From sequence record ON529855.1: a stretch of DNA of 64,000 nucleotides, one strand, 5' to 3'. Under the pieces are notes generated by a model that ran no database searches, was not told where the DNA came from, and was given only the letters and a program-made list of their open reading frames with translations. Made by a program: the position numbers and the translations under genes. Below are positions 1-31,918 of the stretch, piece after piece. Each line of letters opens with the position of its first letter. Within the stretch, counting starts at the first letter, position 1.

Positions 1-103
1 AGCGGACAAAAGTTAACAAGAGGTTAACGCCGTGGCGATTTTTCAGGCGCGCTCGCGGCGAACGGGCGTTAACCTTAACGGCCGTTTACAAAGCCAGGCC
101 CGC

Positions 104-433
104 CTAGTGCGCGTGGAAGTCCACGCGCCCGGCGGGCGAGACGTCGAAGTCCCAGACGTTGAAGCGGGCGGCCTCGGCGGCCTCGGCCTCTTCAGCCGCG
201 CGGGCGGCGGCATAGGCCTCGCCTTCGGCCTTGTGGGCCGCTTCGGCCTCGGCCAGTTCCGCGCACTCGCGGGCGTAGGCCTCGGGGCAGCCGTAGCCCG
301 TGGGGCGGTTGGGGCGCGCGTCGAGCCACGCCTGCGCGGCGGCGACCGTGACGCCCGCCATGACCGGGCGGACGCCGTAGTCGTTGCGGTGCAGGGCGTA
401 GTAGAGGTCGAGGGTTTCCTGATCGGCGGTCAT
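104..433 (-). CDS. hypothetical phage early protein (109 aa)
   Basis: ATG at 433 with GGAGAG RBS, downstream of CtrA box 487. Confidence 0.75.
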   Translation of the reverse strand: MTADQETLDLYYALHRNDYGVRPVMAGVTVAAAQAWLDARPNRPTGYGCPEAYARECAELAEAEAAHKAEGEAYAAARAAEEAEAAEAARFNVWDFDVSPAGRVDFHAH

Positions 434-510
434 CACGTCTCTCCGGCGGGCCAGTCCCGCCACGTCCTCACCCTAGCGGACAGGTGTTAACAAGAGGTTA
501 ACAGCCGCGA

Positions 511-605
511 GAAAATCGGGCAGGGTCCCCGGTCGAAAAATCAGGCAGGGTCCCCGGTCGAAAAATCAGGCAGGGTCCCCGGTCGAAAAATCAGGCAGGG
601 TCCCC
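511..605. repeat. 25-bp tandem repeat GAAAAATCAGGCAGGGTCCCCGGTC (about 4 copies)
   Basis: CAGGGTCCCC at 521, 546, 571, 596. Confidence 0.95.
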
Positions 606-633
606 ATTAACCTTAACGGGCGGGGCGCTCTCG

Positions 634-867
634 TCACTGGCGCGTGTGCCAGTGACGCGCCAGTCGGGAGGTTCGCGGGTTTGTCCCGTCACTATCCCAT
701 TGCCCCGCCGCGACCCAGCCGATGGCGTCGCGCGCGTTGCGGGGATTGTGCTCGGCACCAGAGTCCAAGTCTAGCAGAACCGCGCCATGTGCTCGAACGT
801 CGTCTGGATAACGGGCCTCTATGGCGTTGGCGAGGCGAACCGCTAAGACGTTGCTGCGTCGGATCAT
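634..867 (-). CDS. hypothetical protein (77 aa)
   Basis: Start follows the stop of the 869-982 ORF by 1 nt. Confidence 0.6.
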   Translation of the reverse strand: MIRRSNVLAVRLANAIEARYPDDVRAHGAVLLDLDSGAEHNPRNARDAIGWVAAGQWDSDGTNPRTSRLARHWHTRQ

Positions 868-868
868 G

Positions 869-982
869 TCAGCGCCCTTTCCGGGAGTAGGAGCCTTTGC
901 CCTTGCGGGCCTTGACCACGCGGACCCGGTAAGCGGGGGTGGCGAGGGCGGCGGCGGCGGGGTTGCGTTTCGGGGCGGCCAT
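869..982 (-). CDS. ArfA-like small basic protein (37 aa)
   Basis: Hand translation MAAPKRNPAAAALATPAYRVRVVKARKGKGSYSRKGR; GGAGA RBS; CtrA box 1025; KGKGSYxRK is the ArfA core motif. Confidence 0.65.
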   Translation of the reverse strand: MAAPKRNPAAAALATPAYRVRVVKARKGKGSYSRKGR

Positions 983-1035
983 GGGTGTCTCCGTGGTTGA
1001 TAGAGACACCCTAGCCGACAGAAGTTAACAAGAGG

Positions 1036-1482
1036 TTAAGCGTCTGGATATTGCGCCTGAAGCTTCGCCAGCGTGGCCCGGTCCTCGGCTTCGGCGGCGC
1101 GGCGGGCCTCGTCGCGGCGCTTTGCGGCGGCGGTGCGCTTGGCGTCGCGGGCGGCGGTTTCAGGGGCCAGCCACGCCGGGTCCGCGCCCTCGGCGACCGG
1201 GGCCAGGTAGGACAGGGGGAAGGACACCTCGGCCCAGTCCTGATAGCCGTAGCTTCCCGAAACGTAGAATTTGACGTCCACGGTTTCAGGCTTGTCGCCG
1301 CGCGCCTCGTCCAGTTCCCAGCTTTCGAGATAGCCATAGACGACAGTGTCCAGACGTTGGTCCTTGGGCTTCACAGGCTCATCCAGCCGGAAGATGTAAA
1401 GCGCGCGGGCCAAGTGCTCCAGCGCCTCGTTCAGGGCGTCGCGCTCGGTCACAAAAGCCTTGAGACGGTCAGGGGTCAGCAT
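1036..1482 (-). CDS. hypothetical protein (148 aa)
   Basis: GGAGA RBS; TAA stop lies inside CtrA box 1025. Confidence 0.75.
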   Translation of the reverse strand: MLTPDRLKAFVTERDALNEALEHLARALYIFRLDEPVKPKDQRLDTVVYGYLESWELDEARGDKPETVDVKFYVSGSYGYQDWAEVSFPLSYLAPVAEGADPAWLAPETAARDAKRTAAAKRRDEARRAAEAEDRATLAKLQAQYPDA

Positions 1483-1497
1483 GGGCGGTTCTCCGGT

Positions 1498-2110: not shown

Positions 2111-2623
2111 TTAAACCGTGATGGCGTCGCGGGCCTTGGTCAGTTCCTCGATCAGCACATCAAGGCGGCGCACCGCCTCTTCGCCGCTGTCACAGTCTTC
2201 CTTGGCGTCCAGTTCCACCATGACGGCGGTGAAGATGGTGTCGCCCCCGTCCGTCGCATCGGCCAGGGTTTCCATCCACGCGTAATCCGCCTCGCCGTAG
2301 GCGTTGGCGAACTCGCGTTGCCACGGCGACAGGGGCGTGTCGGGCAGGGTGACGCCCAGCGTATGCGGCATCAGGTTGGTGGCGACTTTCAGGATTTGGA
2401 ATGACCCCGCCATGCCGTCGTCATAGGCGCATTGCAGTTCCTTGGCGATCTGGCGGGCGAGGGCGTCGCCGGTCGCCGCGCCTTGATCGTCGCCCAGCAC
2501 GGCCTCGTCGTCGCCAAGGTCTCGGGTCAGCAGCACGATGGCCTGATATTGATGGTCATGGTGGGCGCGGCAGTGCTCCACCACGTCGGCGCGCGGCAGG
2601 ATGAAAGGGGTAAGGTCGGTCAT
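2111..2623 (-). CDS. hypothetical protein (170 aa)
   Basis: CtrA box 2666, GGGAGA RBS. Confidence 0.8.
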   Translation of the reverse strand: MTDLTPFILPRADVVEHCRAHHDHQYQAIVLLTRDLGDDEAVLGDDQGAATGDALARQIAKELQCAYDDGMAGSFQILKVATNLMPHTLGVTLPDTPLSPWQREFANAYGEADYAWMETLADATDGGDTIFTAVMVELDAKEDCDSGEEAVRRLDVLIEELTKARDAITV

Positions 2624-2735
2624 GGGCTCTCCCGTCGATGATGCGTCGGTTCTAGCACCGATTCGTTAACAAGAGGTTAACGCGCCGGGCGGGGCGGCGG
2701 GCGTTAACCTTAACGGAAGGTGAAGGGTCGGCGCG

Positions 2736-3065
2736 TCAGGGGAGGCGCGCCGGGTTCAGTGACAGACTGACGCGGCGGGCCTTGGACGGCTTGCCGGTCA
2801 GGATTCGCTTGTCGGTCTTGGCCCCGCAGCAGGTGCAGACGGCCCGACCGAGATCGAACCGGACCGAGGCCAGGGGGTCGGCGGTGCCGTTCACGGTCAG
2901 TTTGAGCGCCACGTCTGACAGCTTGGGGTGATGGCCCTGTCTGCCCCGGCGGCGCTCGACGTGGGCGCTCATGCCCGCCGCGTTGCGGTTGCCCCGGCGG
3001 ACCACAGTCCCGGCGACCTTGTAGAGGCCGCCGGAAAAGGTGTTGTCGATGGCGTAGCGCCGCAT
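2736..3065 (-). CDS. hypothetical protein with CxCC motif (109 aa)
   Basis: TGATG coupling to upstream ORF. Confidence 0.65.
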   Translation of the reverse strand: MRRYAIDNTFSGGLYKVAGTVVRRGNRNAAGMSAHVERRRGRQGHHPKLSDVALKLTVNGTADPLASVRFDLGRAVCTCCGAKTDKRILTGKPSKARRVSLSLNPARLP

Positions 3066-3238
3066 CAGGCGTTCACGTCAAAGCGGCCAACGCGGTTCCC
3101 ATTGACGTCGCGCACGGCGCCCATGTCGGCCCCGTTCTCGATCTTGTCGGCGAGGTCGCGCAGGATGCGGGCGAGTTCGCCGGGCTTGGCGTCGTCGTCA
3201 AAAGCGGCGTTGCCGGTGTCGATTTCCAGTTTGAACAT
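3065..3238 (-). CDS. conserved phage hypothetical protein (57 aa, MFKLEIDTGNAAF...DVNGNRVG)
   Basis: Hand-translated; GGAGA RBS; CtrA box 3281. Confidence 0.75.
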   Translation of the reverse strand: MFKLEIDTGNAAFDDDAKPGELARILRDLADKIENGADMGAVRDVNGNRVGRFDVNA

Positions 3239-3424
3239 GGTCTGTCTCCGTTTCGATCCTTAGACCATAGCCGACAAAAGTTAACAATAGGTTAAGGGCT
3301 TCGCGGCCTGTTGCGAGGGGTTGGCGTTAACCTTAACGGGGCGGGGCAAAAGAGGGACGGCGGCCATCCCGGCGCCGTCCAGTTTACCGCGATCAGCGTT
3401 CGCGGCGACGCGTTCGGTTGCCGC

Positions 3425-3724
3425 CTAGAGGGCCGTCAGGGCGTGCCACAGGGCGTTAGGGACCACGCCGCCCGCCGCGACCGGATCGAAGGCGGTTTCC
3501 CCGCCCTCGGGGCCGTAGTGGGGCATGACGCAGCCGGGCAGGGCGTCGATCATGCGGATGCGGTAGAGCGGAACGTCTGCGAAAGGGGGGTTCTCAACCC
3601 GGCCCAGGACCTCGGCGCGACCTTCGCCGCCATTGAGGTAGCCCGGCGCATAGGTCACGATCTGGCCCGGCGCAAAGGCGGTGTTTTCCGGGGTGCGGAT
3701 AGGGGCGACGGCGATGCGGGTCAT
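3425..3724 (-). CDS. hypothetical protein, possible SH3-like beta barrel (99 aa)
   Basis: Follows the 3726-3905 ORF; PGQIV...EVLG...LYRI pattern. Confidence 0.65.
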   Translation of the reverse strand: MTRIAVAPIRTPENTAFAPGQIVTYAPGYLNGGEGRAEVLGRVENPPFADVPLYRIRMIDALPGCVMPHYGPEGGETAFDPVAAGGVVPNALWHALTAL

Positions 3725-3905: not shown

Positions 3906-4035
3906 CGGGCTTGCTCCCTTGTGATGCCTCTAGTCCTACAGGACAGAAGTTAACAAGAGGTTAACGCCACGAACTTTTCGGCCGCCGGGCGGCGCGGGCG
4001 GCGTTAACCTTAACGCCGGGCGGCGGCGGGGCGGC

Positions 4036-4251
4036 CTAGCGGCGGCCAGCCCCTTGGGTCTTTTGGGCCAGGCGCCGCTCGCGCCCGGCGGTCCAGCCCC
4101 GGCGGTAGGCGTCGCCGATCTGGCGACGGTCCACGCCCGCCGCCCACGACATCCGGTTGTCGCGGCGCCCGTATTCCAGCCCGGACTCGGCGTCGATGAC
4201 GCCGCCGTGATATTGCGCCATCAGGGCGCGTTCCGTGACCGGGAGCCCCAT
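4036..4251 (-). CDS. hypothetical protein with Rmf/CrpP-like YxxGxxD...AYxxGW motif (71 aa)
   Basis: Last gene of a translationally coupled 3-gene operon. Confidence 0.6.
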   Translation of the reverse strand: MGLPVTERALMAQYHGGVIDAESGLEYGRRDNRMSWAAGVDRRQIGDAYRRGWTAGRERRLAQKTQGAGRR

Positions 4252-4475
4252 CAGTGAACCCCGCCCAGCCGGGCGGCGCGCTGGTCGTCGTTTTCCATAT
4301 AGAAGTGACCGTCGATGCGGTAGATGCGTTTTCCGGCGTCATAGGGGCGCAGGCCCCCGAACGCGACTTGGAAGGTGGCGGGGGCGTCGCCCACGTAGAG
4401 GGTCGCGCCGTCCGGCTTGACGCAGACGGCGGCCCCCTCGCGGACCTGAACGGTTCCGATCAGGCGGCGGGCCAT
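4251..4475 (-). CDS. hypothetical protein (74 aa)
   Basis: TGATG coupling on both sides. Confidence 0.7.
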   Translation of the reverse strand: MARRLIGTVQVREGAAVCVKPDGATLYVGDAPATFQVAFGGLRPYDAGKRIYRIDGHFYMENDDQRAARLGGVH

Positions 4476-4774
4476 CAGGCGGCGGCCTTCTTGGCGGCGG
4501 GCTTATAGCCCTCGACGCGGCCTTCCAGCAGGGCGGACCCGTCCAGCGGACCCTCGAACGAGTCCACGTCGTCCATGGCCGCCATCGTCACGGCGCGGAA
4601 GGCCTTTTTGCGGACGACGGAATTCACCGCCCCGTCGTTGGCGCGGCTGACGGCGCGGTAGCAGGCTTCGGGGTGAGATTGAGCGCGGACGGTGCGCTTA
4701 TAGACGCCCATGTCGTCGCCCATCCAGAACATGACGACGAACTCTTGGCGTTCGGGGCGGATCGGGTGTTGCAT
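4475..4774 (-). CDS. hypothetical protein (99 aa)
   Basis: AAGGGA RBS before ATG 4774; CtrA box 4826. Confidence 0.7.
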   Translation of the reverse strand: MQHPIRPERQEFVVMFWMGDDMGVYKRTVRAQSHPEACYRAVSRANDGAVNSVVRKKAFRAVTMAAMDDVDSFEGPLDGSALLEGRVEGYKPAAKKAAA

Positions 4775-4925
4775 CGCGGGTGGTCCCTTGCGGTGGTTTG
4801 TTCCCTTATACATAGGGGACAGAAGTTAACAAGAGGTTAAGACGCGAAAGTTTTTTGGGCGGGGCAGGCGGGCGTTAACCTTAACGACGGGTTAATGGAT
4901 CAGCGGCCCCGAAGGGCCGCCCCTG

Positions 4926-5345
4926 TCAGGCCGCGACCGGCGCGCGCAACAGGGTCCACAGACGGTCCATCGCCTTGTTGACGACGTGGGGCGACCCGAC
5001 GCCGAACGGCGTGACGTTGACCACGTCGGCGGACTTCCAGACATAGGCCCGGATCGTCGCGACGCGGGGACCGTGCGGCGGCTGTTCGGTGGTGACGAAC
5101 AGGGTGACGCCCAAGGCGGGGACGTCGTAGAAGCCGCCGGGGAACTTCGTGCCGAAGCCCTTCATGGCGCCCTTGTCGAACCAATGCCCGCGACGACGGC
5201 GCGCGTAGTCGCGTTCGATATTGGCGAGGCAGTTGCTCGATCCCTCGAAGGCCGGGCCTTCGTGCGGCGCGGCGGCGGCGGCGGCGAGGAGGCCCGGCAG
5301 GGCGGCGGCGGCGGCTTGGGCGATGCGTTCGGCTTGGGTGGTCAT
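4926..5345 (-). CDS. hypothetical protein (139 aa)
   Basis: GGAGA RBS; CtrA box 5387. Confidence 0.8.
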   Translation of the reverse strand: MTTQAERIAQAAAAALPGLLAAAAAAPHEGPAFEGSSNCLANIERDYARRRRGHWFDKGAMKGFGTKFPGGFYDVPALGVTLFVTTEQPPHGPRVATIRAYVWKSADVVNVTPFGVGSPHVVNKAMDRLWTLLRAPVAA

Positions 5346-5492
5346 GGTCGTCTCCGGTTTGATAGGTCCAACCTACAGGGGAGAAGTTAACAAAACGTTA
5401 ACGGCCGTCAAGGTCTTTCGGGCCGCGCGTTAAGGTTAACGGCGGGCGGGCGGCAGGGATGCGCCCCGGCGCGAGGCCGGGGCGATCCTGGG

Positions 5493-5813
5493 TCAGCCGA
5501 TCAGGCGCGTCTTGAGCGTCGCCCGGCCTTCCGGCGTCAGCTTGGCGCGTTGGGCGCGGAGGAAGTCAAGCCCCTTTTGATAGGAGTCGATCCTGCCGCC
5601 GTATTGGCGCTCCAACCACTTCAACGGCTCCGGGTAATGCGAGGCGTAGAAGGCCACGCGACCCGGCCTGATGCGGGGGAACAGCTTGGCGCGGGCCTCT
5701 TTGATCGAGGTCGCGCCGGGGACGGGCAGTTCCGCGACCACGCGCCCCTTGCGGAGGATATGGGCCGTGTTCAGTTCCGGCGCGTAGGCGTGGCGTTCGA
5801 GGATCAGTTTCAT
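5493..5813 (-). CDS. hypothetical protein (106 aa)
   Basis: GGAGA RBS; CtrA box 5856. Confidence 0.8.
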   Translation of the reverse strand: MKLILERHAYAPELNTAHILRKGRVVAELPVPGATSIKEARAKLFPRIRPGRVAFYASHYPEPLKWLERQYGGRIDSYQKGLDFLRAQRAKLTPEGRATLKTRLIG

Positions 5814-5866
5814 CGGTCGTCTCCGTTTCGATCCTTAGACCATAGGCGACAGAAGTTAACAAGAGG

Positions 5867-6508
5867 TTAAGAGGTGAAGTTTTCCAGATAGCGGCGGCGC
5901 ATCCCCGCGACCGTCGTCGGCGTGACCCGGACAATGTCGGCGTTTTTGCGCATCATATCCGCCCGCATGAACGACGTCGTCGCCAATTGCAGGGTGTGGT
6001 TCACGCAGGAATGATAGCCGTCTTTCAGGCGCTCAATCGGCCACGTCGCCGGTTGCAGCTTGGCGCGTTCCAAGGTCTCCAGCGGGATCGGCACGGCGAG
6101 GTCGTCGCGGTGCTGATCGGACTCCGTCCGTTCATAGGTCGCGCCGCGCGGATAGACGCCCAAGATCAAATCCCCGTTGTTCAGCCGGAACCACGTCAGG
6201 CCGGAACGCCCGTCGTCGTCAACCGCTTGCGCCAGCACGTAGCGGGCCACGGCGGCGTCCGCCGGGACGGCCCACGCCACAACCGAATCGAGCATATTGC
6301 CGTCTTCGTCATGGGCGAAGATCGCGGACGGGGGGCCAGGTTCCTCCACGACGCCGGACGGGTCTAGGCCATAGCGCCCTTCGAGCCAGACGGCGCGGGC
6401 CATGGTCAGGCCGTCGCGATAGGCGTCGCGTTCGGCCTCCGTCTCAAAGGGGCCGTGCAGGACGTTCGCCGGGCAACGCATGTAAAAGCCAACCGCTGAA
6501 TCGGTCAT
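5867..6508 (-). CDS. hypothetical protein (213 aa)
   Basis: GGGAGA RBS; CtrA box 6551; stop inside box 5856. Confidence 0.8.
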   Translation of the reverse strand: MTDSAVGFYMRCPANVLHGPFETEAERDAYRDGLTMARAVWLEGRYGLDPSGVVEEPGPPSAIFAHDEDGNMLDSVVAWAVPADAAVARYVLAQAVDDDGRSGLTWFRLNNGDLILGVYPRGATYERTESDQHRDDLAVPIPLETLERAKLQPATWPIERLKDGYHSCVNHTLQLATTSFMRADMMRKNADIVRVTPTTVAGMRRRYLENFTS

Positions 6509-6615
6509 CGGGGTCTCCCTTGATTGAGCCTCCTGTCTAGCACTGATTCGTTAACAAGAGGTTAACGTCGCGGAACGGACGGGCGTTAACCTTAACGGGC
6601 GGTAAGGGTAGAACG

Positions 6616-6846: not shown

Positions 6847-6954
6847 GGGGCTTCCTCCATTGCTGCCCCATTCTTGTAGCACTGATTCGTTAACAAGAGG
6901 TTAACGCGTTTCGGCGGTGGGCGTTAACCTTAACGGGCGTTAGGAAAGCCAGGG

Positions 6955-7365: not shown

Positions 7366-7506
7366 GGGGTCGGCTCCGGGCGGGTGATCCTGTCACCCTA
7401 GAGCCGATTCGTTAACAAAAGGTTAAGGCCTATCCGCCGCCGGGACGCATTAAGGTTAACGGCGGGCTGGCGCGGAAGGCCGCCCGGCGAACCGGGCGGC
7501 GCAGGT

Positions 7507-8508: not shown

Positions 8509-8698
8509 GGGGCTCTCCTGTTGCGTTGGGGATACCCTAGTCCGCAGAAGTTAACAATAGGTTAAGATGCTGGAGATTTCCCGGCGGGCGGGGCGGGCGT
8601 TAACCTTAACGCGCCGTTAACCTTACCGGCGGGCGGGCAGGGGCGGCCCCGGCCTAGAGCCGGGGCGCCGGGGCGGCGTCATTCCGCCCCGTTCCCTG

Positions 8699-8899: not shown

Positions 8900-9268
8900 T
8901 CAGCCCTCGTAACGGTCGTGAACCGAAACCGGGCCGCCGAAGCGGGGACCGCCGAGGCGTTCCACGGCTTCGTTGAAACGGCTGTCCGTCGTTCCGGCGT
9001 AGTTGCCGCCCGCCATCAGCCAGCGCGTGTCCATCTCGCCGGTGTCCGTCGCCGGGACGATCTTGACCGCGCCGGGGACGTTGCCCTTGACCAGATAGGC
9101 GGCGGGGCGCGACGGGTTGGGGTCGAACGGGCCATCGACGTTGACCAAGGTCAGTTGCGCGACCTTGGACGTCACGCCGCCGTTGGTGCAGTCCACCGAG
9201 TCCAGCTTGATGATGTCGCCGGGGTGGTCGGCGGCGGCGCGGCGGTAGATGGAAACGATCAGGCCCAT
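8900..9268 (-). CDS. conserved phage hypothetical protein (DCTNGG...MAGGNY...DSRF...HDRYE)
   Basis: AAGGAGA RBS before ATG 9268; CtrA box 9313. Confidence 0.8.
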   Translation of the reverse strand: MGLIVSIYRRAAADHPGDIIKLDSVDCTNGGVTSKVAQLTLVNVDGPFDPNPSRPAAYLVKGNVPGAVKIVPATDTGEMDTRWLMAGGNYAGTTDSRFNEAVERLGGPRFGGPVSVHDRYEG

Positions 9269-9342
9269 GGGGCTCTCCTTTGTTTTGACCTTCACACCAT
9301 AGCGCGAAGGTCTTAACAAGAGGTTAACGCCGGAAAGATTTT

Positions 9343-9513
9343 TCAGGCGATGGCGAAGGTGACGGCTCCGGTCGAGACGCCACCCAGCAGGGCGCGGCGG
9401 AACGGGTCGAGCGCGGGCGCCGGGGCGGCCTTGGCCTTGCGGGCGCGCGGCTTGGGCGCGGCCTTCGCGGCGGCGGGCTTGCGGGCGCGGGTCGTCTTCG
9501 GGGCGTCGGTCAT
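9343..9513 (-). CDS. Lys/Ala/Arg-rich small protein with hydrophobic C-terminus (56 aa)
   Basis: MTDAPKTTRARKPAAAKAAPK...; degenerate box at 9570. Confidence 0.55.
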   Translation of the reverse strand: MTDAPKTTRARKPAAAKAAPKPRARKAKAAPAPALDPFRRALLGGVSTGAVTFAIA

Positions 9514-9672
9514 AGCAGGGCCTTTCAGCAGGGGTTGAAGTCCAGAGCCCCCAGCCTCGCACTGATTCCTTACCAAAGGATTAACGGGCCAGGTCACGCC
9601 GGGCGGGCGTTAACCTTAACGGATCGGGCGGGACCGTTAACCACGGCGGAGGGGTCCGCCGTGGTCGTGGGG

Positions 9673-10011: not shown

Positions 10012-10188
10012 TGGTCGTCTCCTCTTTCGATACAGACCACTATAGAGGCGATTCGTTAACAAGGGGTTAACGCCGGGACGATTTTTCGGGGGCGCGGGCG
10101 GGCGTTAACCTTAACAGCGCGTTAACCTTAACGACCGGTTTACAGCCCCGTTAACCATGGCGGGGGCGCCGCCATGGTCGGGGTCCGA

Positions 10189-10440: not shown

Positions 10441-10628
10441 CGGGCGTCTCTCCTTGTTCCGATGCTTAGACCATATCCGGCAGAAGTTAACAAGAGGTTA
10501 AGACCGGAAAGATTTTTCAGGGGTCGTCCGGGGCGGCGTTAACCTTAACAGGCCTTAAGGTTTTGTTAAGGTTAACAGGCGGGGCCTGGAAATGGTTAAC
10601 GGCCGTTAACCACTCCCCTTAACCGTCC

Positions 10629-20607: not shown

Positions 20608-20763
20608 GACGGGTGTCTCCTGTCGGATGGCGTTGAAGCCTGTCTAGCAGGAAGGTCTTAACAAGAAGTTAACGCGAAGGGAAGTCGTATTTTAACTTTC
20701 CGTTAAGGTTAACGGACGGCGGTCGGGAAAGAAACGCCCGGCTGTCTGAAGCCGGGCGTGGGG

Positions 20764-21575: not shown

Positions 21576-21631
21576 GGGGGGTCTCCCGTTGTTCGATGCT
21601 TGAGGTATAGGCGGAAGGTCTTAACAACCCG

Positions 21632-21970
21632 TTAACAGCCGCGAAAATCTTCCGCCTTGCCGGCCTTGATGTCATGGGCGCGCTGCAACCACGCCAAGGC
21701 GGTCTCGACGTTGGCGTAGCGCCCGCCGAACATGAAATCGTGGTAGGGCTCCCAGCCGTCGATGCTGTAGTTCCCATACCCGGCGGGGCGGTAAAGGATC
21801 GCGGACTTGCCGTCGCGGCCGATCATGTCGCGGGGCAGCCAGCGGCTGACGCCGTCCTCGCACGTCACGGCGGTGTTCAGATAGCTGATGGTGTTGAGGC
21901 CCAGGTCATCGGCGCGGGCGTGGAAGTTTCCCGGCAGCTTGGGGGCGGGTTCGGCTTTGCGTCGGGCCAT
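21632..21970 (-). CDS. hypothetical protein (112 aa)
   Basis: AAGGAGA RBS; CtrA box 22012; stop inside box 21621. Confidence 0.75.
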   Translation of the reverse strand: MARRKAEPAPKLPGNFHARADDLGLNTISYLNTAVTCEDGVSRWLPRDMIGRDGKSAILYRPAGYGNYSIDGWEPYHDFMFGGRYANVETALAWLQRAHDIKAGKAEDFRGC

Positions 21971-22191
21971 GGGGGTCTCCTTCGTTGAGGCTCCCTTGTC
22001 GCACGGATTCGTTAACAATAGGTTAACGCGGCGCGTTTATTTTCCGTTAAGGTTAACGGCCAGGCCGGGACCGAAAAAGCCCGCCGGGGGAGACAACCCG
22101 GCGGGCTCGGTTCAGATCAGCGCCAGCAGGCTGAGCGCGATCAGAAGGTTCATGGCGATGACCGGGCGGACGTGTGTCCTCAGGACGGCGG

Positions 22192-23105: not shown

Positions 23106-23621
23106 TTAATCGGCGAAGATTTCCGACAGGGGAGGGATGATTTTGTAGGGGATCGCCTCGACGCTGGCCTTGTTGAAGGCGCCCAGATAGGTCTTGTAGT
23201 AGCGGGCGCGCTTGCCGTCCGTCATCAGCTTCCACTTGGTCGCGTGACCCGGAATCCACTGCTGATTGTCGGCGGCCTCCATGGCGGCGATGAACTGCGC
23301 CACGGTCGGGCCGTTCGCCTCGGCGTCGGTCGGCTCGATACGGGTCAGTTCGTGCCAGGGATGGTCGTCCTTGTAGTGACCGCCGGCGCCGTCCGACGAC
23401 CAGTCCGCCGCCTCCAGCCCGACCAAGCCCGGCAGGAAGTCCTCGCCGTCGCCGGTCAGCAGGGCGTCTATGGCGCACGCCTGTTCCAGCGACATCGCGC
23501 CGTCCAGCACGACCTCCAAGTGCTCTTTGTAGTTCGCGGCGTCGCGATACATATAGCTGACGCAGGTGTTGCGCTTGGGCTCGGCGAAGTCCGAGGCGAT
23601 GACGAAAGACGGCTCGATCAT
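23106..23621 (-). CDS. conserved phage hypothetical protein (Y-YRDA-NYK motif)
   Basis: GGAGGAGA RBS; CtrA box 23673; stop inside box 23095. Confidence 0.8.
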   Translation of the reverse strand: MIEPSFVIASDFAEPKRNTCVSYMYRDAANYKEHLEVVLDGAMSLEQACAIDALLTGDGEDFLPGLVGLEAADWSSDGAGGHYKDDHPWHELTRIEPTDAEANGPTVAQFIAAMEAADNQQWIPGHATKWKLMTDGKRARYYKTYLGAFNKASVEAIPYKIIPPLSEIFAD

Positions 23622-23683
23622 GGTGTCTCCTCCATGGGTGATCTCGATTGAGACCACCCTACAGGCAAGAAGTTAACAAGAGG

Positions 23684-24166
23684 TTAATCGGCGGCGGGAA
23701 CTTTGAGGTCCACGCCGAAGACGTGAACCAGTTCGCCGCTCGGCTTGCGCACGATCACGCCCAGCCACTTCTCCTCGACAAAATAGCCCGTCACCTCGGC
23801 GTCGCCGATTCGGTTGACGGCGACGCGCACGGTCGCGCCGACCTGGGGCGGTGAATCCTCGCCGGACCACAGGACAGCGCCTTCGATGCCCGGCGGAAGC
23901 AGGCGGCCGTCTTCCCAGCGCGCCAGTTCATAGGCGGGCAAGTGCGGACGCCACAGGGGCGCATAGACATCCATCAGCCACGACGGGCCGTAGGTGTTGC
24001 GGATCGCGCGCAGGAGATTGCCCGCGTCCTCCTGCGTGTCGCCGCCGGTCGCCCACAGAATGGTCAGATGCTCTTTCCAACCGCCTTCGACCTTGGCGTA
24101 TTTGTCGGCGAAGTTCAGCAGGGCGGCGGACGCCTCGGGCGTCAGGGCGGGGTAGGTGTCAGGCAT
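23684..24166 (-). CDS. hypothetical protein (WK--L---W--G...LR-IRN-YGP-WL motif)
   Basis: GGGAGA RBS; CtrA box 24210; stop inside box 23673. Confidence 0.8.
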   Translation of the reverse strand: MPDTYPALTPEASAALLNFADKYAKVEGGWKEHLTILWATGGDTQEDAGNLLRAIRNTYGPSWLMDVYAPLWRPHLPAYELARWEDGRLLPPGIEGAVLWSGEDSPPQVGATVRVAVNRIGDAEVTGYFVEEKWLGVIVRKPSGELVHVFGVDLKVPAAD

Positions 24167-24340
24167 GGGGCGTCTCCCTTGTTCGATGATTCCTTGTAGC
24201 GGCGATCTCTTAACAAGAGGTTAACGCCGTGACAAGAGCGCGCGGGCGTTAACCTTAACGCGACGTTAAGGTTAACGCCCGGCTAAAGGGAAAGACGCGC
24301 CGCCGGGGGAGACAACCCGGCGGCGCGGCAGGCGGCGGCC

Positions 24341-25311: not shown

Positions 25312-25478
25312 GGGGTCTCCTCCCGTTGCTGACCCTCCCTGTATCGCACGAAGTTCTTAACAACAAGTTAACGCCGCGATTTATTTTCAGCGGGGGAGGC
25401 GGCGGCGTTAACCTTAACGCGCCGTTAAGGTTAACGCGAGCGGGTCGCAGGAAGAGAGAGGGCCGTAGCCCTCTCCCC

Positions 25479-25988
25479 TTATTGCTGCTCGACATGAGCG
25501 CGGTAATAGGCGACGCCTTCGGCCTCAGGCATCAGGTTCAGGATCACCGCCTGAGGCTGCTTCTCATGGATGACCTTGACGTGGGCGGCGAGCGGGTGCG
25601 GCGCCGTCAAGTCCATCTGGAAGATGCCGGGCGAGCCCGGTTTGGTGAAGAGGACTTTTTTCTTGATGGTGCGGCGATAGGCCTTGAGCCATTCGTGGGC
25701 GGTAATCTCCTCGCCGATGAGCAAAGACAGGTCCATGTCGATCAGGCCCAGCCCTTCGGACAGGTCGAACTGGGGATAGGTCGCCTTGATGCGCGCCTCC
25801 AAGGCGGCGAGGTCGTCATAGGTGAATCGGCCGACCGGGTGGATGCGGTCTTCGCCGCCCTGGCCGGTGTTGGAGGCCTCGGCGAACTTCTCGCCATCGA
25901 CATAGACGGTGGCGGTGTAGGCGGTCGTCTCCTCCGACAGGGACGGCATGGTCTTGAGGTTCTTGAGGGTGATGACGGGTTTCTGCAT
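25479..25988 (-). CDS. conserved phage hypothetical protein (SEET-A--A-VY-DG...N-G-GG motif)
   Basis: AGGAGA RBS; CtrA box 26033. Confidence 0.8.
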   Translation of the reverse strand: MQKPVITLKNLKTMPSLSEETTAYTATVYVDGEKFAEASNTGQGGEDRIHPVGRFTYDDLAALEARIKATYPQFDLSEGLGLIDMDLSLLIGEEITAHEWLKAYRRTIKKKVLFTKPGSPGIFQMDLTAPHPLAAHVKVIHEKQPQAVILNLMPEAEGVAYYRAHVEQQ

Positions 25989-26126
25989 GGCGGTCTCCTG
26001 ATCCGGTGATGTCTCACCCTAGCCGCAAGGTCTTAACAAATCGTTAACGCCGGTCAGCCTCGGCGCTGCGTTAAGGTTAACGCGGTCGGGTCGCAAAAAG
26101 GCGCCCGGTCGAAGCCGGGCGCTGGT

Positions 26127-26267
26127 TCAGGCGGCGGTGCGGTAGCGGGTGTGGCCCCGGTCCCAGGCGTAGGCCTCGACCGATCCGCTCGGGTGGGGGT
26201 TGTTCCACCACTTGACGCCCCGGTGCGCGGCGGCGTAGCCCGCGCCTTCGATCTGGGCGGCGTCCAT
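26127..26267 (-). CDS. small Rmf/CrpP-like motif protein (46 aa)
   Basis: MDAAQIEGAGYAAAHRGVKWWNNPHPSGSVEAYAWDRGHTRYRTAA; TGATG coupling; followed by a terminator. Confidence 0.6.
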   Translation of the reverse strand: MDAAQIEGAGYAAAHRGVKWWNNPHPSGSVEAYAWDRGHTRYRTAA

Positions 26268-26521: not shown

Positions 26522-26719
26522 CTATAGGTTCAGGGCGGCGTCGAACGCCTGGGATTGCAGTTTCTTGGCGGCTTCGGCCTCGGCGGGGTAGAGCCGGGCC
26601 AGACCGTCGAAGCGCTCTTTCTGATGCGAGCGCTCGCCCTCGGCGGCGGTCATGTGCATGACCTCGCTCCACAGGTGGGCCATTTCGAGGATCAGGACGG
26701 AGCGGAGGGAAGCGTTCAT
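26522..26719 (-). CDS. hypothetical protein (65 aa)
   Basis: AAGGAGA RBS; CtrA box 26761. Confidence 0.7.
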   Translation of the reverse strand: MNASLRSVLILEMAHLWSEVMHMTAAEGERSHQKERFDGLARLYPAEAEAAKKLQSQAFDAALNL

Positions 26720-26771
26720 GACGGTCTCCTTGTTGACCTCGCCACCCTAGCAGCGAGGTCTTAACAAGAGG

Positions 26772-27269
26772 TTAACAGCGGCGAAGCATTTCGCGCATCA
26801 GGGCTTCCTCGTTGCGGGCGATGTCCAGCGCGGCGCGGTCGTGGCCTTGCTCATGCGCCTGCTTGGCCTGCTGTCGGCAGATGTCCTGGCGCTTGCGGAT
26901 GTCGGCCTCCGACAGGGTGCGGAACAGGGCGTCGGCCTCCTGATCGACCTTGACGGTCCAGTGCTGCTGCGATTCGTCGTCGGCGCGCAGGTGGGCGGGG
27001 AAGTAGGCCTGGGGCGCCGGGTCAGCCGGGACGGCGGCCGGGGTGTAGAGCCCCAGCACGACCGCCAGCGCGTCGCGGTGAAACTGCGAACCGTCCATCG
27101 CCGAGTTCAGCACGAAGGCGCGCGCCTCCAAATCATCGCCGAACGTCGGCGATTCGTCCTCGCGATGGATTTCATAGCGCGGGGCGTCGTAGCCGTCCGT
27201 GGTGTCGAACAGGCCCCAGCCCTCGGCGCAGGCGCGGTCTTCATCAAAAGGAATGGGCGTGGTTTTCAT
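26772..27269 (-). CDS. hypothetical protein (EGW-LFD...EI-R-DE motif)
   Basis: AGGAGA RBS; CtrA box 27314; stop inside box 26761. Confidence 0.8.
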   Translation of the reverse strand: MKTTPIPFDEDRACAEGWGLFDTTDGYDAPRYEIHREDESPTFGDDLEARAFVLNSAMDGSQFHRDALAVVLGLYTPAAVPADPAPQAYFPAHLRADDESQQHWTVKVDQEADALFRTLSEADIRKRQDICRQQAKQAHEQGHDRAALDIARNEEALMREMLRRC

Positions 27270-27427
27270 CGGGGTCTCCTGTCGTGGTCGGCGTCTGTTC
27301 TAGCACCGATTTGTTAACAAGAGGTTAACAAAGTTCGCGGCGGCGCCGGGCGTTAACCTTAATGCGCTGTTAAGGTTAACGGCGGGCGGGCGAAAGGGAC
27401 GCCCCGGCGCGAGGCCGGGGCGCGGGG

Positions 27428-27640: not shown

Positions 27641-27852
27641 CAGACGACCGCCAGCAGGCGCGCGTGCGAGGTCTCGACCGAATAGGCCTCGATCTGGAGC
27701 CCCGGCAGGGCGGCGCGCAGTTCGTCGCGCACAGCGAGGGCTTCGGCGGGGTCTTCGGTGGTCAGGCGCAGTTCGCCGATCCGGCGGGCTGGGGCGCCCT
27801 CGGCGGCGCGGCGCGACAGTTCCAGCCGCAGGTCGTAGGGGGTGTCGGTCAT
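27640..27852 (-). CDS. hypothetical protein (70 aa)
   Basis: GGGAGA RBS; CtrA box 27895. Confidence 0.7.
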   Translation of the reverse strand: MTDTPYDLRLELSRRAAEGAPARRIGELRLTTEDPAEALAVRDELRAALPGLQIEAYSVETSHARLLAVV

Positions 27853-27905
27853 CGGTGTCTCCCGTGATTGAGCGTCCGGTATAGCCGGAAGGTCTTAACA
27901 AATCG

Positions 27906-28271
27906 TTAACGGCTGGGTGCGCTTAGGCGGGCGATGATTTCGTCGTTCGTCATCGTGTCCATCAGGTCTTGCACCTGCCGGGCCTTGTCATCCTCGACCG
28001 CCTGGGCCGCCGCCTGGGCGCGGCGATGCTCGGCCAGCGCCGCCTTGCCGGCCTCGGTGGTCTCCGGGTCGATGGTCATGTAAAGGCTGACCTCGCGGCC
28101 CTGCCGATCCACGAAGGTCAGGCTTCCAGACGGCCGCACCTTGACGGTGAACTGCGCCTTGACCAGCCGCTCGGCGGTCTCCTGACCGAAGTCCCCGCCG
28201 AAGCTGCCGCCCGCCGCCTTGACGGTGTTGTCGCTCTTGAGCCGGGTGTGATAGCCGATGTTCTTGAACAT
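27906..28271 (-). CDS. hypothetical protein (121 aa)
   Basis: AAGGAG RBS before ATG 28271; stop inside box 27895. Confidence 0.75.
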   Translation of the reverse strand: MFKNIGYHTRLKSDNTVKAAGGSFGGDFGQETAERLVKAQFTVKVRPSGSLTFVDRQGREVSLYMTIDPETTEAGKAALAEHRRAQAAAQAVEDDKARQVQDLMDTMTNDEIIARLSAPSR

Positions 28272-28621: not shown

Positions 28622-28864
28622 CGGCGTCTCTCCTTGTGAGCCCCCTTTATGACAGCCAGAAGTTAACAACAAGTTAACGGCGGCGCTTTTCTGCATTTTT
28701 CTTCGGGGGGGCGGCGGCGGGCGTTAACCTTAATAGCCTGTTAAGGTTAACGGGCGGCTTCCAGCCTGGGAAACGGCGTCCCGGAACGGGACGCCTCTCC
28801 TAGAAGGTGAGCAGGATGACCAGCAGGGCCAGAAAGAGGCGGGAGGCGCCGGCCAGCTTGTCGA

Positions 28865-29335: not shown

Positions 29336-29426
29336 CGGGGTCTCCCTTGTTGATGCGAGGCTGCAATCTACGCGACAAGGTCTTAACAAAAAGTTAACAG
29401 CAGCGCAATCGCTTTTCTTCGCGATG

Positions 29427-29455
29427 TTAACCTCTTGTTAACTTCTTCGTGGGAT
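29427..29455 (+). promoter_or_regulatory. Plus-strand CtrA-box promoter TTAACCTCTTGTTAAC
   Basis: Exact reverse complement of the cassette box, divergent from box 29383, drives the 29489 gene. Confidence 0.85.
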
Positions 29456-29488
29456 AAGGGACAGGTCAACAAAAACAGGAGATCGCCG

Positions 29489-29734
29489 ATGGGCGAAGTC
29501 ATCCCTCACCGCGTCTGGCATCACAAGCCGTCCGGGCGCACCGCCAGCATCTTCGGCGCCGTCCCTTGGGTCTCGGCGGCGCAAGAGTCCGAATGGGAAC
29601 GGGTCACGGTCGGCTGGACCGTCCGCCACCCGGACGGCACGACCGGGGTCGGTCGCTTCGCCTTCGAGACGAAGGACGAGGCGCAGGCTTGGGTCGATAA
29701 GAATCCGAACTATCCGGGCAACCAGCAGGACTAG
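29489..29734 (+). CDS. conserved phage hypothetical protein (81 aa)
   Basis: AGGAGA RBS; only plus-strand gene of the cassette region; hairpin after the stop. Confidence 0.75.
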   Translation: MGEVIPHRVWHHKPSGRTASIFGAVPWVSAAQESEWERVTVGWTVRHPDGTTGVGRFAFETKDEAQAWVDKNPNYPGNQQD

Positions 29735-29788
29735 GAACAGGGGCGTCGGTCGCAAGGCCGGCGCCCTTCGTCTTTGCGACCCGCTCGC

Positions 29789-30150
29789 GTTAACCTTAAC
29801 AGAGCGTTAACCTTAATGCCCCTGCCCGCTCTAGGGGTATGACCGGGTATGACCAGGTATGACCGGGTCATACCGGCGCGGATTCCCGCTGAAAATCACC
29901 CGAATTCGCCGAATTGCGCCCAAAATCGCCGGATTTTGACCCTAAATCACTGTTTTTGCTCGATTTTTCGGTATTTCAGGCCCGGCGGCGGCCGTTAACC
30001 TTAACAGGGCGTTAACCTTAACGCGGTTTTGGTTAACGGGGCATTAACCTTAACGCCTGGATGGTTAACGTGGCGTTAACCTTAACGCGGTGATGGTTAA
30101 CGGGCCGTTAACCTTGACGGCGGGAGGGTTAACGGCCCCAGGGTTAATCG
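29789..30150. repeat. Dense non-coding cluster of TTAA-N7-TTAA and GTTAACCTTAAC elements
   Basis: N7 pairs at 29796, 30001, 30033, 30065, 30097 interleaved with N2 pairs. Confidence 0.85.
29834..29875. repeat. 10-bp tandem GGTATGACCR x3 followed by its inverse GGTCATACC
   Basis: gggtatgaccgggtatgaccaggtatgaccgggtcatacc. Confidence 0.85.
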
Positions 30151-30154
30151 GGGC

Positions 30155-30412
30155 GGCGTCAAATCGCGCTCGCGTCAAATTCGGCCGGCGTCAAATCGAA
30201 ACGCCGTCAAGTCAAGTCTGTCGCGTTGAAGCGCGCTCGCGTCAAATCGGCCGATCGTCAAATCGCGCTCCCGTCAAATCCAGATCGCGTCAAATTCGCG
30301 GGGCGTCAAATCGACCGGGCGTCAAATCGCGCTCCCGTCAAATCGACCGGGCGTCAAATCGGCGAGGCGTCAAGTCGACCGGGCGGCCTGAAGCGGGCCG
30401 GCGTCAAGTCGG
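30155..30412. repeat. CGTCAAAT(C/T) repeat array, about 16-17 bp period, about 14 copies
   Basis: Includes GTCAAATCGAAACGCCGTCAAGTCAAG, nearly the same as the 12.1-12.2 kb unit. Confidence 0.9.
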
Positions 30413-30608
30413 GCTGCCAGGGCGCGCCCGAGCGGGCTTGCGCGGCGCTCCGCCTCCCAGGGAGGACGCCTGGAAGAAACGGCCTGAAGCGCGCCCCAGC
30501 GCCTCTTTTTACCCTGAGCCGGGGCAGGGTCAAGCCGAACAGGGTCGAGAAGGCCGTTTTCCGGGCCGTGGAGCGCCCTGGCGCGGGCGGGGCGTCCGCA
30601 GGCTCGGC

Positions 30609-31060
30609 AGAGTCACGAAACCCATCCACGGGCCGGAAAACCAGGCAGGACGGGCGATTGTCAGTCATGATACCTACGAAGCGTGACTCTGCCGGGATTT
30701 TTGTCAGTCACGAAACCCGGAGGCGGGCTTCGCCGGCGATCCTGGCGCCCAGGCGGGTCAGTGTCAGCGGTTGTGTCAATGCGGGACACAATAAGGCAGG
30801 ATTAGGGCGAAATGGGATTTCAGGGCGGAGTCACGTTTGCCGAAACGGGCGCTCGGGACTGCTGTTGATTTTATTGAGGTTTTTCGCCGGAGCCGGACGT
30901 TTTGGAGTCACGATTGCCGTTGTGCGGTGCAGCAATGCGCCGGATTTGGGTGGGTCCAGGCGGGGCGAAACAGAGTCACGTTTTCCTAAGCCTTTGGGAT
31001 CATTACGCTTTTCAGGCGGGGCCAACACCTGAGTCACGGTTGACACGAACGATGACTCCG
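30609..31060. promoter_or_regulatory. Cluster of (G/C)AGTCAY(G) half-sites including two AGTCAY-N14-RTGAC palindromes
   Basis: Half-sites near 30610, 30663, 30706, 30828, 30904, 30972, 31031; full pairs at about 30664-30687 and 31033-31056. Confidence 0.75.
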
Positions 31061-31138
31061 TCAGTCAGAGGCCCAAAAACAAGAAAATCGGTGTAAAAAC
31101 AGTGATTTAGGGCCGTTTTTCGGGATTTAGGGGTGAAA

Positions 31139-31321
31139 TTAGCGGCGATTCCGGTGAAATCGGTCGATGGCGGTGTCGTGAGGGGCTTGCCGCCCGTCAA
31201 AACGCCCTGCACGCTCCCGATGACGCCGTTTGCGCTCCCAGGGACCGGGCCAGATGATCTGGACGGTCCAGACCAGCAGCAGGAGGAACACAAAGGCCCC
31301 CATGACGATCGCTACCCACAT
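31139..31321 (-). CDS. possible small membrane protein (60 aa)
   Basis: N-terminal hydrophobic helix; GGAGAG upstream. Confidence 0.4.
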   Translation of the reverse strand: MWVAIVMGAFVFLLLLVWTVQIIWPGPWERKRRHRERAGRFDGRQAPHDTAIDRFHRNRR

Positions 31322-31349
31322 CGCGCGCTCTCCGTGACCTGGTGAATGA

Positions 31350-31560
31350 CCAGGGTCCCCGCCGGATGAATCTGGAGGGTCCCCCGACCGAAAATTCGCC
31401 AGGGTCCCTGGACGAAAAATTCCAAAGGGTCCCCGGCCGTTAATTCAGCAGGGTCCCCCGGTCGAAAAATCCCGAGGGGTCCCCGCGTTGAATTCGCCAG
31501 GGTCCCTGGGCGATGAATCCAGACGGGTCCCCGGTCCAGAAAATCCGGAAGGGTCCCCGC
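31350..31560. repeat. AGGGTCCCC array, 24-26 bp period, about 9 copies
   Basis: Core preceded by an RAAWT tract, as in the arrays at 511 and 13305. Confidence 0.9.
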
Positions 31561-31918
31561 AGGCTATCACGGTCGGGCCGGCGCCGCCATGGGCGCGCGG
31601 CGTTAACCTTAATGGCGCGTTAACCATGCCTGTTAAGGTTAACGCGGGGCCGGCCGCCGTTAACCCTCTGATCGTTAAGGTTAATGCCGCCGGGTGGCTG
31701 GCGCGAGATCGTTGACAGGGGACTCAGTTGGTCTGTCGCACTTATGACACAGTCCGAGGGCGCCGTTGTCTGTCAACAAATCGCGTCTGGAATGCGCTTC
31801 CAGCGGAGCCCCGATTTTGAACCCTCTCCTATTCTTTCATGGATCATATCCCAACATCCAAAGAAAAAGGCCGGTGCAGCGCACCGACCCCTTTCGAGTC
31901 AGATTGTGGAGAGGCTGA

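Follow-up and report, generated by a model that had tools for sequence, protein, structure and literature searches.

A conserved 12-base word between terminators and promoters of early phage genes is a candidate docking site for CtrA

The early intergenic spacers of the Brevundimonas phage vB_BpoS-Domovoi contain about 50 copies of the 12-base word GTTAAGGTTAAC, which is also found in many related phages. The window analysed here consists of bases 1-64000 of this genome (ON529855.1, 352,705 bp); according to the record, Domovoi is a jumbo phage of the Dolichocephalovirinae with the host B. pondensis. The element appears to be a protein-binding site and the middle part of an early cassette that consists of a terminator hairpin, 16-24 nucleotides (nt), the element, ~20-50 nt and a promoter; in phiCbK-like and related siphophages of Alphaproteobacteria, such cassettes would fill the terminal-repeat (early) region. 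The sequence and spacing of the copies suggest that GTTAAGGTTAAC may well be a double CtrA half-site, that is, an upstream auxiliary docking site for the host CtrA, a reading that is held here with middling confidence.

An abundant word confined to the early block

A program search for TTAANNTTAA (TTAA-N2-TTAA) identifies 48 sites in the window, compared with 0.02 expected from shuffles, and the centre is CC or GG in all 48. A preliminary description of this stretch, made from the sequence alone, had arrived at about 45 copies by hand count, and the coordinates quoted there agree with the program within 1-2 nt. With at most one mismatch, GTTAACCTTAAC is found 50 times in the window (0.04 expected), 34 times on the plus and 16 times on the minus strand, in line with the earlier remark that both orientations occur.

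With one exception, the 48 sites fall within 69-31684 and outside annotated coding sequences, although coding sequence makes up 73% of positions 1-31700; the remaining site, at 37885 (element 37884-37895, plus strand), lies within a coding sequence outside the early block. In the whole genome, 53 of the 55 copies fall in a ~36-kb block, 348,135-31,684, that spans the start of the record. In the window, this early-gene block occupies 1-31690 (minus strand) and runs over the record start to ~346.9 kb. Its annotated genes in the first 31.7 kb are small, of unknown function and, except for one, on the minus strand; the terminase genes come next, at 31.9-35.6 kb, starting with the large subunit (31919-34642, minus strand).

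The element in the junction cassette

Read on the coding strand, a Domovoi junction begins with a stop codon and a G+C-rich hairpin with a T-run, followed after ~14 nt by the element; then come 19-52 nt, GTTAACCTCTTGTTAAC (a TTAA-N7-TTAA over the -35), a GCTAGAAC-type -10, GGAGA and the ATG. The promoter box TTAAC-N3-TTGTTAA occurs 48 times in the Domovoi genome, always within 346917-29441, and 47 of these boxes are on the minus strand. The window contains 39 CtrA-type boxes on this strand (13-29397, e.g., 24210-24224), each with TTAA-N7-TTAA over the -35 followed by a GCTAnnnn -10. The sole plus-strand box of this type (29427-29441) precedes the only plus-strand gene of the block (29489-29734) and is therefore divergent from the box 29383-29397. 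To call these sequences CtrA promoters, as in the preliminary description, is reasonable given that the homologous promoters of phiCbK gp005 and gp018 are bound and activated by CtrA (PMC9437464).

The further statement that the element accompanies almost every such promoter goes too far: an element is located 6-52 bp upstream of 28 of the 39 minus-strand boxes in 1-32000. Nine of the 11 boxes without an element belong to short junctions (52-74 bp) that lack a terminator and, with one exception, have the upstream stop codon inside the box (980-1038, 5811-5869, 9266-9345, 17479-17541, 19975-20041, 21573-21634, 23619-23686, 26717-26774 and 27850-27908). In eight of these, the upstream gene stops at a TAA that also belongs to the first TTAA of the CtrA-type box of the following gene, so that coding sequence and promoter overlap; in the junction 9266-9345, the upstream gene ends in TGA, upstream of the box. 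Because the short terminator-less junctions contain a box and no element, the element is dispensable for the promoter as such.

In position, the element is tied most closely to the terminator before it. Between the end of the hairpin and the first element there are 14-26 nt in Domovoi (mostly 16-24, mode 18) and 15-23 nt in the related phages Gurke and Kikimora; CcrSC mostly has 18-23 nt, and of 89 cases from IMG/VR, 75 fall within 16-24 nt. This spacing holds even where the sequence between the two is unrelated. On the promoter side, the element ends 19-52 bp upstream of the Domovoi box and thus does not lie over the -35 or -10 as canonical CtrA boxes do; the distance from the end of the element to TTGAC(A) is 24-45 bp in Gurke and Kikimora, 15-72 bp in CcrSC, and mostly 28-46 bp in IMG/VR. 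The element-promoter distances are multimodal and lineage-specific (19-24, 29-34, 40-41 and 50-52 bp in Domovoi; 25, 31-38 and 41-45 in Gurke; 29 and 42 in IMG/VR). These modes share no common phase, and helical phasing of the element with the promoter is therefore not claimed. The orientation relative to transcription is free, with 53 GG versus 36 CC in IMG/VR and opposite dominant orientations in Domovoi and Gurke.

Location between an intrinsic terminator and a promoter also bears on the possibility that the element acts as RNA, namely, as a hairpin GCGUUA-AGGU-UAACGC in read-through transcripts that would serve as a processing or stability signal. The element with its flanks can be folded at -6.2 to -6.7 kcal/mol, and doublets at -24 kcal/mol. 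However, being downstream of intrinsic terminators and upstream of promoters, the element would mostly remain untranscribed; moreover, the two orientations yield different loops (AGGU or ACCU), and conservation of the stem does not extend past the 12-mer into its flanks, so that a role as RNA appears most improbable.

About 30 Domovoi junctions combine terminator, element and promoter, and the same layout is found in Gurke, CcrSC, Lacusarx and IMG/VR contigs. In layout, mobility itself being a separate matter, these junctions resemble the promoter-early stem-loop (PeSL) cassettes of T4-type phages, which were reportedly described by Arbiol et al. in 2010 and combine a terminator-like hairpin with an early promoter. 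In both cases, a repeated intergenic hairpin-promoter module flanks small variable early genes; the difference is that here an exact 12-mer stands between hairpin and promoter and survives a change of promoter type.

In the Brevundimonas phages, many elements have a second palindrome, GCGA-N5/6-TCGC, at a distance of 1 nt on the terminator side (16046-16060, 25436-25450 and 26082-26096 in Domovoi, as well as Gurke junctions). It is not found in CcrSC or in the IMG/VR phages, and it resembles the SciP half-site GCGAC without matching it.

Conservation across phages and promoter types

A conservation scan of related phages, which the preliminary description had proposed as a check, detects the element in cultured relatives and in ~70 IMG/VR contigs, with terminase identity among the carriers of only 35-54%. 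Gurke and Kikimora have 64 and 54 copies per genome, 62 of them in the early block (40 kb) of Gurke and 53 in that of Kikimora. These two phages and CcrSC possess almost no TTAA-N7-TTAA and no Domovoi-type boxes. Their early promoters consist of TTGACA, preceded by an A-rich tract, and a -10 of the CTAGAAG or CTATGCG type, and the element still lies between the terminator and this promoter. Lacusarx and many uncultured IMG/VR phages likewise have TTGACA early promoters together with the element. For example, the two members of a gene pair with 86% amino-acid identity (Domovoi 25479-25988 and Gurke stretch 12053-12562) have a CtrA-box and a TTGACA promoter, respectively, and the element is present in both; at the Gurke junction orthologous to that of the single element 26070-26081 (minus strand), the element is kept next to a TTGACA promoter. 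The notion of the element as a companion of the CtrA promoter box has to be abandoned in view of these relatives, and sequence comparison indicates that the element predates the CtrA-box promoter and is more widely distributed.

In phiCbK, CcrPW and Bajun, 2-4 exact copies are located in the non-coding repeat hub beside TTGACG iterons. They co-occur with a variant, GTTAGGGTTAAC, which is the sole form in Colossus (~9 copies). The common denominator of all forms is GTTA(A/G)GGTTAAC, in which GGTTAAC (reverse complement GTTAACC) is the best-kept half. A scan of IMG/VR for inverted doublets yields 95 stretches from the ~70 contigs, with a G+C content of 44-63%; many of these contigs have 10-27 copies per ~10 kb along with the CtrA half-site motif TTAACCAT, which was reportedly defined by Laub in 2002. 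Complete IMG/VR records likewise show confinement to one region: a 132-kb record has 41 of its 45 copies in a 21-kb block, and a 79-kb record has 23 of its 24 in a 5-kb block. Among cultured phages, a BLAST search with one doublet matches only phages of Caulobacter, Brevundimonas, Erythrobacter and Citromicrobium.

In the Brevundimonas phage Delta, which has been described as unrelated to the phiCbK-like phages, all copies lie in the 1.3-kb gap region analysed by Mascolo et al. Beside this hub, Delta (MN862068, 1574-3051) carries a gene 53% identical to phiCbK gp008 (phiCbK 4070-5122) and a small gene that is also found in the CcrSC repeat (23552-23719). Given these genes in common with the phiCbK and CcrSC repeats, early modules seem to have been exchanged between lineages.

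Such exchange would be the essence of an alternative in which the element is not itself a binding site but the best-preserved part of a mobile promoter-terminator cassette spread by recombination and gene shuffling. The mosaic structure of the early region, where relatives cover 13-92% of the query, flanks such as TTTTGCGAnCCCGnTCGCG that are common to the cassettes, and the early genes that Delta shares with phiCbK all point in this direction. However, the 12-mer stays exact while flanks and promoter type change, it is retained at terminase identities as low as 35%, its copies obey strict spacing rules, and the hub arrays lie outside cassettes. Neutral hitch-hiking would not keep 12 of 12 bases across hundreds of copies, and this alternative is considered improbable.

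The 12-mer is also present in chromosomes of Rhodobacterales, at 6-20 copies each compared with ~0.05 expected, inside repeat modules. In some of these modules, it is located 15-20 bp after 3-4 GTGCAG-type direct repeats; in others, it forms the centre of a long palindrome (GAGGATATTT...AAGATGAAG / CTTCATCTT...AAATATCCTC); in still others, it lies within a 130-bp tandem repeat, and the flanking genes vary. Rfam and tRNA scans of these modules produced no match.

Sequence and spacing grammar

A single element is not a canonical TTAA-N7-TTAA site: its half-sites are 6 bp rather than 11 bp apart, as the preliminary description had correctly noted. An N7 spacing arises only between neighbouring copies or between an element and TTAACCAT. 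The flanks do conform to the CtrA consensus (TTAAC...GTTAA facing the spacer), and G at -1 is found in 61-90% and C at +1 in 64-92% of the copies across all five data sets. Aligned with the TTAACCAT 8-mer, the element reads TTAACCTT (7/8) or, in the Colossus/phiCbK variant, TTAACCCT. Exact TTAACCAT copies adjoin the element in the hubs, where the second TTAA of the element is followed by N7 and TTAACCAT; in Domovoi, this is seen at 29,989-30,135, in an array of five elements interleaved with TTAACCAT-type half-sites with a 32-bp unit (plus strand). Single elements in IMG/VR often have an extra TTA[AC] at -11 or +17.

Pairs of copies follow rules of their own. In four cultured phages, 31 pairs are spaced at 17 bp, of which 24 are CC>GG, 7 direct and none GG>CC; 13 pairs are spaced at 27 bp, and six GG>CC pairs at 25 bp. 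The 17- and 27-bp spacings bring the inner TTAAs 11 and 21 bp apart, which is the CtrA phase, and most of the TTAA-N7-TTAA in Gurke, Kikimora and CcrSC are such doublet junctions. All five N7-joined doublets named in the preliminary description are present in the window: the inverted doublets at 24248-24276 (TTAACCTTAA-N7-TTAAGGTTAA), 25407-25435, 27352-27380 and 28723-28751, the last three likewise with 17-bp spacing, and a direct doublet of the same spacing within the main hub (29789-29817, plus strand). Further doublets at N7 spacing are found at 10104/10121 (10104-10132, plus strand, direct, 17-bp spacing, with an inner TTAA-N7-TTAA) and 29994/30011 and, with a degenerate second copy 17 bp away, at 8599/8616 (8599-8627, plus strand). 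The 27-bp spacing is represented by the inverted doublets 10538-10576, with CCTTAAGG in the centre, and 11024-11062, one copy of which is fused to a TTAA-N7-TTAA box.

CtrA as the candidate reader

Of the two possibilities raised in the preliminary description, the sequence evidence favours, in part, the auxiliary CtrA site, and a second factor with this element as its operator is kept as a rival. CtrA is the most likely reader because no phage-coded candidate emerges, the element has the sequence of two half-sites with consensus flanks, a probe composed of such elements is shifted by CtrA, and there is a precedent in the host pilA promoter.

With respect to phage-coded candidates, Pfam and PHROGs scans of 59 early proteins reveal no DNA-binding family, and whole-record scans of six phages detect no Trans_reg_C (PF00486), GerE (PF00196) or DUF1153/SciP-type (PF06627) domain. 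The proteins common to Delta, Domovoi and Lacusarx are enzymes of nucleotide metabolism, with no regulator-like protein among them. The annotated winged helix-turn-helix (wHTH) protein encoded at 27906-28271 was considered as a reader and rejected, being absent from the element-carrying Caulobacter phages and lacking Pfam or PDB support. For two early proteins conserved as far as CcrSC, ESM Atlas look-ups provided no usable lead.

The probe in question is the 81-bp DELTA_120, which was shifted by phosphorylated CtrA in an electrophoretic mobility shift assay (EMSA) and was counted by its authors as three CtrA sites and two half-sites (PMC9437464, supplementary file 16). It consists of four element-type repeats, TTAACGTTAA, GTAAGGTTAA, TTAAGGTTAA and TTAACCTTAA, at 13- and 17-bp spacing. 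As for the precedent, the upstream CtrA sites of Caulobacter pilA, located 31 bp from the -35 site and two of them 3 bp apart, tune repression and CtrA sensitivity (PMC11264516). Sites 2 and 3 of pilA resemble the phage arrangement in being auxiliary CtrA sites packed tightly tens of bp upstream; they differ in being full degenerate N6 boxes, whereas the phage copies are mostly abutting half-sites with a 2-bp linker that are identical in sequence and number ~50. Single half-sites are functional in the host, with 107 activator and 24 repressor promoters (Zhou 2015, PMC4287350). The conserved half of the element, GTTAACC, is of this kind, but host half-sites are located at the -35 or -10, whereas the element is found at -65 to -100 with a second TTAAC 6 bp away.

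In the proposed mechanism, the element would represent two CtrA half-sites placed back to back, in which each TTAA keeps its consensus flank base (G-TTAA, TTAA-C) and TTAACC, the core of the extended half-site, forms one half. The element would be a landing site for host CtrA~P. A lone copy would offer two orphan half-sites on opposite helix faces, and copies 17 or 27 bp apart, or a copy combined with TTAACCAT, would build maximally packed canonical TTAA-N7-TTAA boxes. CtrA bound at about -65 to -100 would occupy an upstream auxiliary site comparable to the host pilA sites 2 and 3 and would tune the strength of the early promoter and its CtrA threshold, hence the timing in the cell cycle; in phages without a -35 CtrA box, the element would be the sole CtrA input. 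For a lone element, we infer both the binding of CtrA and the effect of such binding.

Several observations weigh against CtrA as the reader. The linker is CC or GG in 206 of 206 sites of the four cultured phages, for which the CtrA consensus gives no reason, and in 87% of the unique IMG/VR sites (CG in 9%). Some uncultured phages stack copies at 13 bp, whereby no N7 box is formed; their TTAA-Nx-TTAA spectrum peaks at N2 (509), N9 (199), N7 (150) and N3 (67), so that N9 is as common as N7. The GG>CC arrangement never occurs at 17 bp in the four phages, though the same inner box would result. Most copies are single and without a partner half-site (Domovoi 5/24), and a 6-bp period corresponds to no known CtrA geometry. 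In 401 Caulobacterales genomes, the 12-mer is found 72 times, no more than the reversed control. The Delta EMSA was carried out without a mutated-probe control (PMC9437464), and the homology of the hub-adjacent Delta genes to terminal-repeat genes of phiCbK implies that the hub was perhaps inherited or exchanged and would not be independent evidence of a host factor.

The fixed linker, the 13-bp arrays, the absence of GG>CC at 17 bp and the tight coupling to the terminator fit better with a reader of the entire 12-mer that marks unit boundaries; such a reader is kept as the main rival. Under this possible, though less favoured, interpretation, the 12-mer is the operator of a dedicated sequence-specific non-CtrA protein, which could be conserved among Alphaproteobacteria or else be a phage protein that has escaped recognition, possibly an injected or early one. 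From its site ~10 bp past the point of RNA release, the protein would stop RNA polymerase in the U-tract, enforce termination and shield the next promoter from read-through or supercoiling. Conservation of the whole 12-mer including the GG linker, free orientation with a dominant orientation that differs between Domovoi and Gurke, and 13-bp arrays incapable of forming CtrA boxes are all consistent with such a protein, as are the terminator distance as the tightest positional rule, the presence of the element at junctions with a terminator and its absence from promoter-only ones, and its persistence under either promoter type. The 6-2-6 inverted layout CGTTAA-GG-TTAACG further resembles dimer operators such as the 7-2-7 sites of NarL. 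However, no candidate protein is at hand: the early proteins lack a recognisable DNA-binding domain, no GerE, SciP-like or OmpR-type domain is found in the six phages, and the Caulobacter phages do not have the annotated wHTH gene. In addition, hub copies lie away from terminators, the TTAACCAT phasing and the N7 rule indicate CtrA, and the terminator distance may merely reflect compaction of a duplicated cassette.

A more specific form of this rival, which is doubtful, holds that a widely conserved non-CtrA protein reads the whole 12-mer as a roadblock or insulator ~10 bp past the terminator release point, that early genes would thereby become sealed units, and that the repeat modules of Rhodobacterales would use the same reader. 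An analogy is provided by the roadblock terminators of RNA polymerase I, in which Reb1 or TTF-I is bound behind a T-rich release element. The likeness, an analogy only, lies in a protein site at a fixed short distance past a T-rich release element; here, the polymerase is bacterial, and the roadblock role of the 12-mer is putative. The CtrA and roadblock readings are compatible in function, since bound CtrA itself could be the block.

Two other known sites were compared with the element by eye and rejected. The IHF consensus WATCAANNNNTTR does not fit any register of the 16-mer or its complement. The SciP operator, GCGNC-N5-GNCGC, is located at -60 to -90 of CtrA promoters (PMC4287350); it resembles the Domovoi element in lying upstream of a CtrA box and in the GCG...CGC flanks, but the element has its outer GCG and CGC 10 bp rather than 9 bp apart and lacks the inner C and G, and its flanks are specific to the lineage.

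One conserved host locus, in four Caulobacterales genomes (60-64% G+C), contains a fusion of the element with a canonical box and a half-site (TTAAGGTTAAC-GTATGA-TTAAG ... GTTAACCAT). It is located ~40 bp upstream of a gene for a 157-aa membrane protein that belongs to no Pfam family.

Relation to published work and implications

Clusters of CtrA sites in these terminal repeats are already published. The analysis of Mascolo et al. 2022 (PMC9437464) concerns the same groups of pilus- and flagellum-tropic alphaproteobacterial phages, the terminal repeat or gap regions and the TTAA building block, and the phiCbK gp005 and gp018 promoters activated there have the Domovoi type of box. The difference is that TTAA-N7-TTAA and orphan half-sites were scored in that study, whereas the 12-mer, its GG linker, its place in the cassette, its occurrence ahead of promoters that lack a CtrA box and the spacing rules are undescribed there. 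The earlier assertion that no description was known is thus right with regard to the 12-mer, which is unnamed in that study, and wrong with regard to the arrays, which were counted in it. A literature search with four 10- and 12-mer strings returned only unrelated matches, e.g., primers, among the matches listed, and the passages searched in Gill 2012, Friedrich 2023 and the Lacusarx papers do not mention the motif. The searchable literature yielded no account of the 12-mer as an entity, of where it sits in the cassette, of its independence of the -35 box, of the spacing grammar or of the wider phage spread.

The phiCbK-like phages are standard tools of Caulobacter cell-cycle research, and timing of their early genes via host CtrA has already been proposed. 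The observations described here add a control region that is built from an exact 12-mer in a fixed cassette and outlives changes of promoter type, with a wider alphaproteobacterial spread that includes phages of Sphingobium, Erythrobacter and Citromicrobium and many uncultured ones. Should CtrA read the element, early phage expression would be linked to the state of the host cell, a new half-site arrangement (2-bp linker, tight 17-bp packing, upstream position) would be defined, and each genome would offer ~50 natural test cases for the threshold and timing of auxiliary sites. Should another protein read it, a conserved DNA-binding factor would await discovery and, if the roadblock reading holds, roadblock termination of the Reb1/TTF-I type would have a counterpart in bacteria or phages. 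Under either reading, the early or terminal-repeat region of such phages can be recognised simply by this element, which also offers a direct handle for reporter, footprint and pull-down work.

A probable terminal repeat and non-coding hubs

The Domovoi early block probably represents a collapsed long direct terminal repeat, to judge from its relatives. In CcrSC, each annotated 23.9-kb terminal repeat contains 38 copies of the element, with 3 elsewhere. In Lacusarx, 12 of 12 copies are within the last 9.3 kb, inside the terminal repeat, which is ~10.5 kb long and was placed by the authors of the original description from two-fold coverage. The physically mapped left end of phiCbK is at terminase codon 652; it aligns with residue ~650 of the Domovoi terminase large subunit, that is, window position ~32,694, which would then be the start of the Domovoi terminal repeat.

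The main non-coding hub (29336-31138) includes the element array, GCGTCAAATCG iterons, GGGTATGACC repeats and CGTGACTC repeats, and its layout is homologous to that of phiCbK 1745-2384, CcrSC 2231-3703 and the Colossus, CcrPW and Bajun clusters. A second non-coding hub (11734-12560) has two elements 35 bp apart at its edge (11822-11868). Iteron-like arrays of GCGTCAAATCG (TTGACGC on the coding strand) are found at 30155-30385 and 12099-12238, with periods of 16/32 bp and 36 bp. Both arrays are located in large non-coding stretches adjoining elements, and the same layout is seen in phiCbK, CcrSC, Colossus, CcrPW and Bajun; they could be an origin or a -35-like decoy array.

The sequence GGGTATGACC, repeated 3.4 times at 29835-29868, is a palindromic block (GGTCATACC / GGTATGACC). 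Its position between the element cluster and the first early promoter is kept in Gurke, phiCbK, CcrPW and Colossus. Another family of repeats, GGGGACCCTG-N-GAWTTTTCG with a period of ~25 bp, occurs at 512-605 and 31376-31559, flanking the early block, and at 13306-13412; repeats of this type are also present in phiCbK (840-1000), Colossus and CcrPW. The third array lies within the annotated coding sequence 12561-13544, and that annotation may therefore be wrong.

Single copies and neighbouring genes

The single elements on the plus strand of the window are located at 68-79 (reading TTAAGGTTAA on the coding strand), 606-617 (with one flank mismatch, adjoining GGGGACCC 25-bp repeats), 2054-2065 (between a terminator and the promoter box 2016-2030), 2703-2714, 3326-3337, 4003-4014, 4874-4885, 6585-6596, 6923-6934, 9609-9620, 15153-15164, 16034-16045, 16974-16985 and 18339-18350. 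Those at 3326, 4874, 16974 and 18339 follow a terminator, and those at 15153 and 16034 have a terminator T-run 14 nt before them. On the minus strand, single elements are found at 5429-5440 and 7449-7460, both noted for their opposite orientation, and at 13652-13663, 19209-19220, 20702-20713 and 22046-22057. Three elements at 31602-31685 lie beside GGGGACCC repeats just downstream of the terminase gene.

Among the early proteins, a 46-aa protein encoded at 26127-26267 (minus strand) matches CcrSC gp008 with 78% nucleotide identity, while the terminal repeats are otherwise almost unrelated. Its pattern, GYxAAxxG...NP...W..G, is reminiscent of small proteins of the RMF/CrpP type, and for this reason the protein is not taken for a regulator. 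Another early gene, at 869-982 (minus strand), has a 37-aa product that resembles the alternative ribosome-rescue factor ArfA (Pfam PF03889, E 1e-9).

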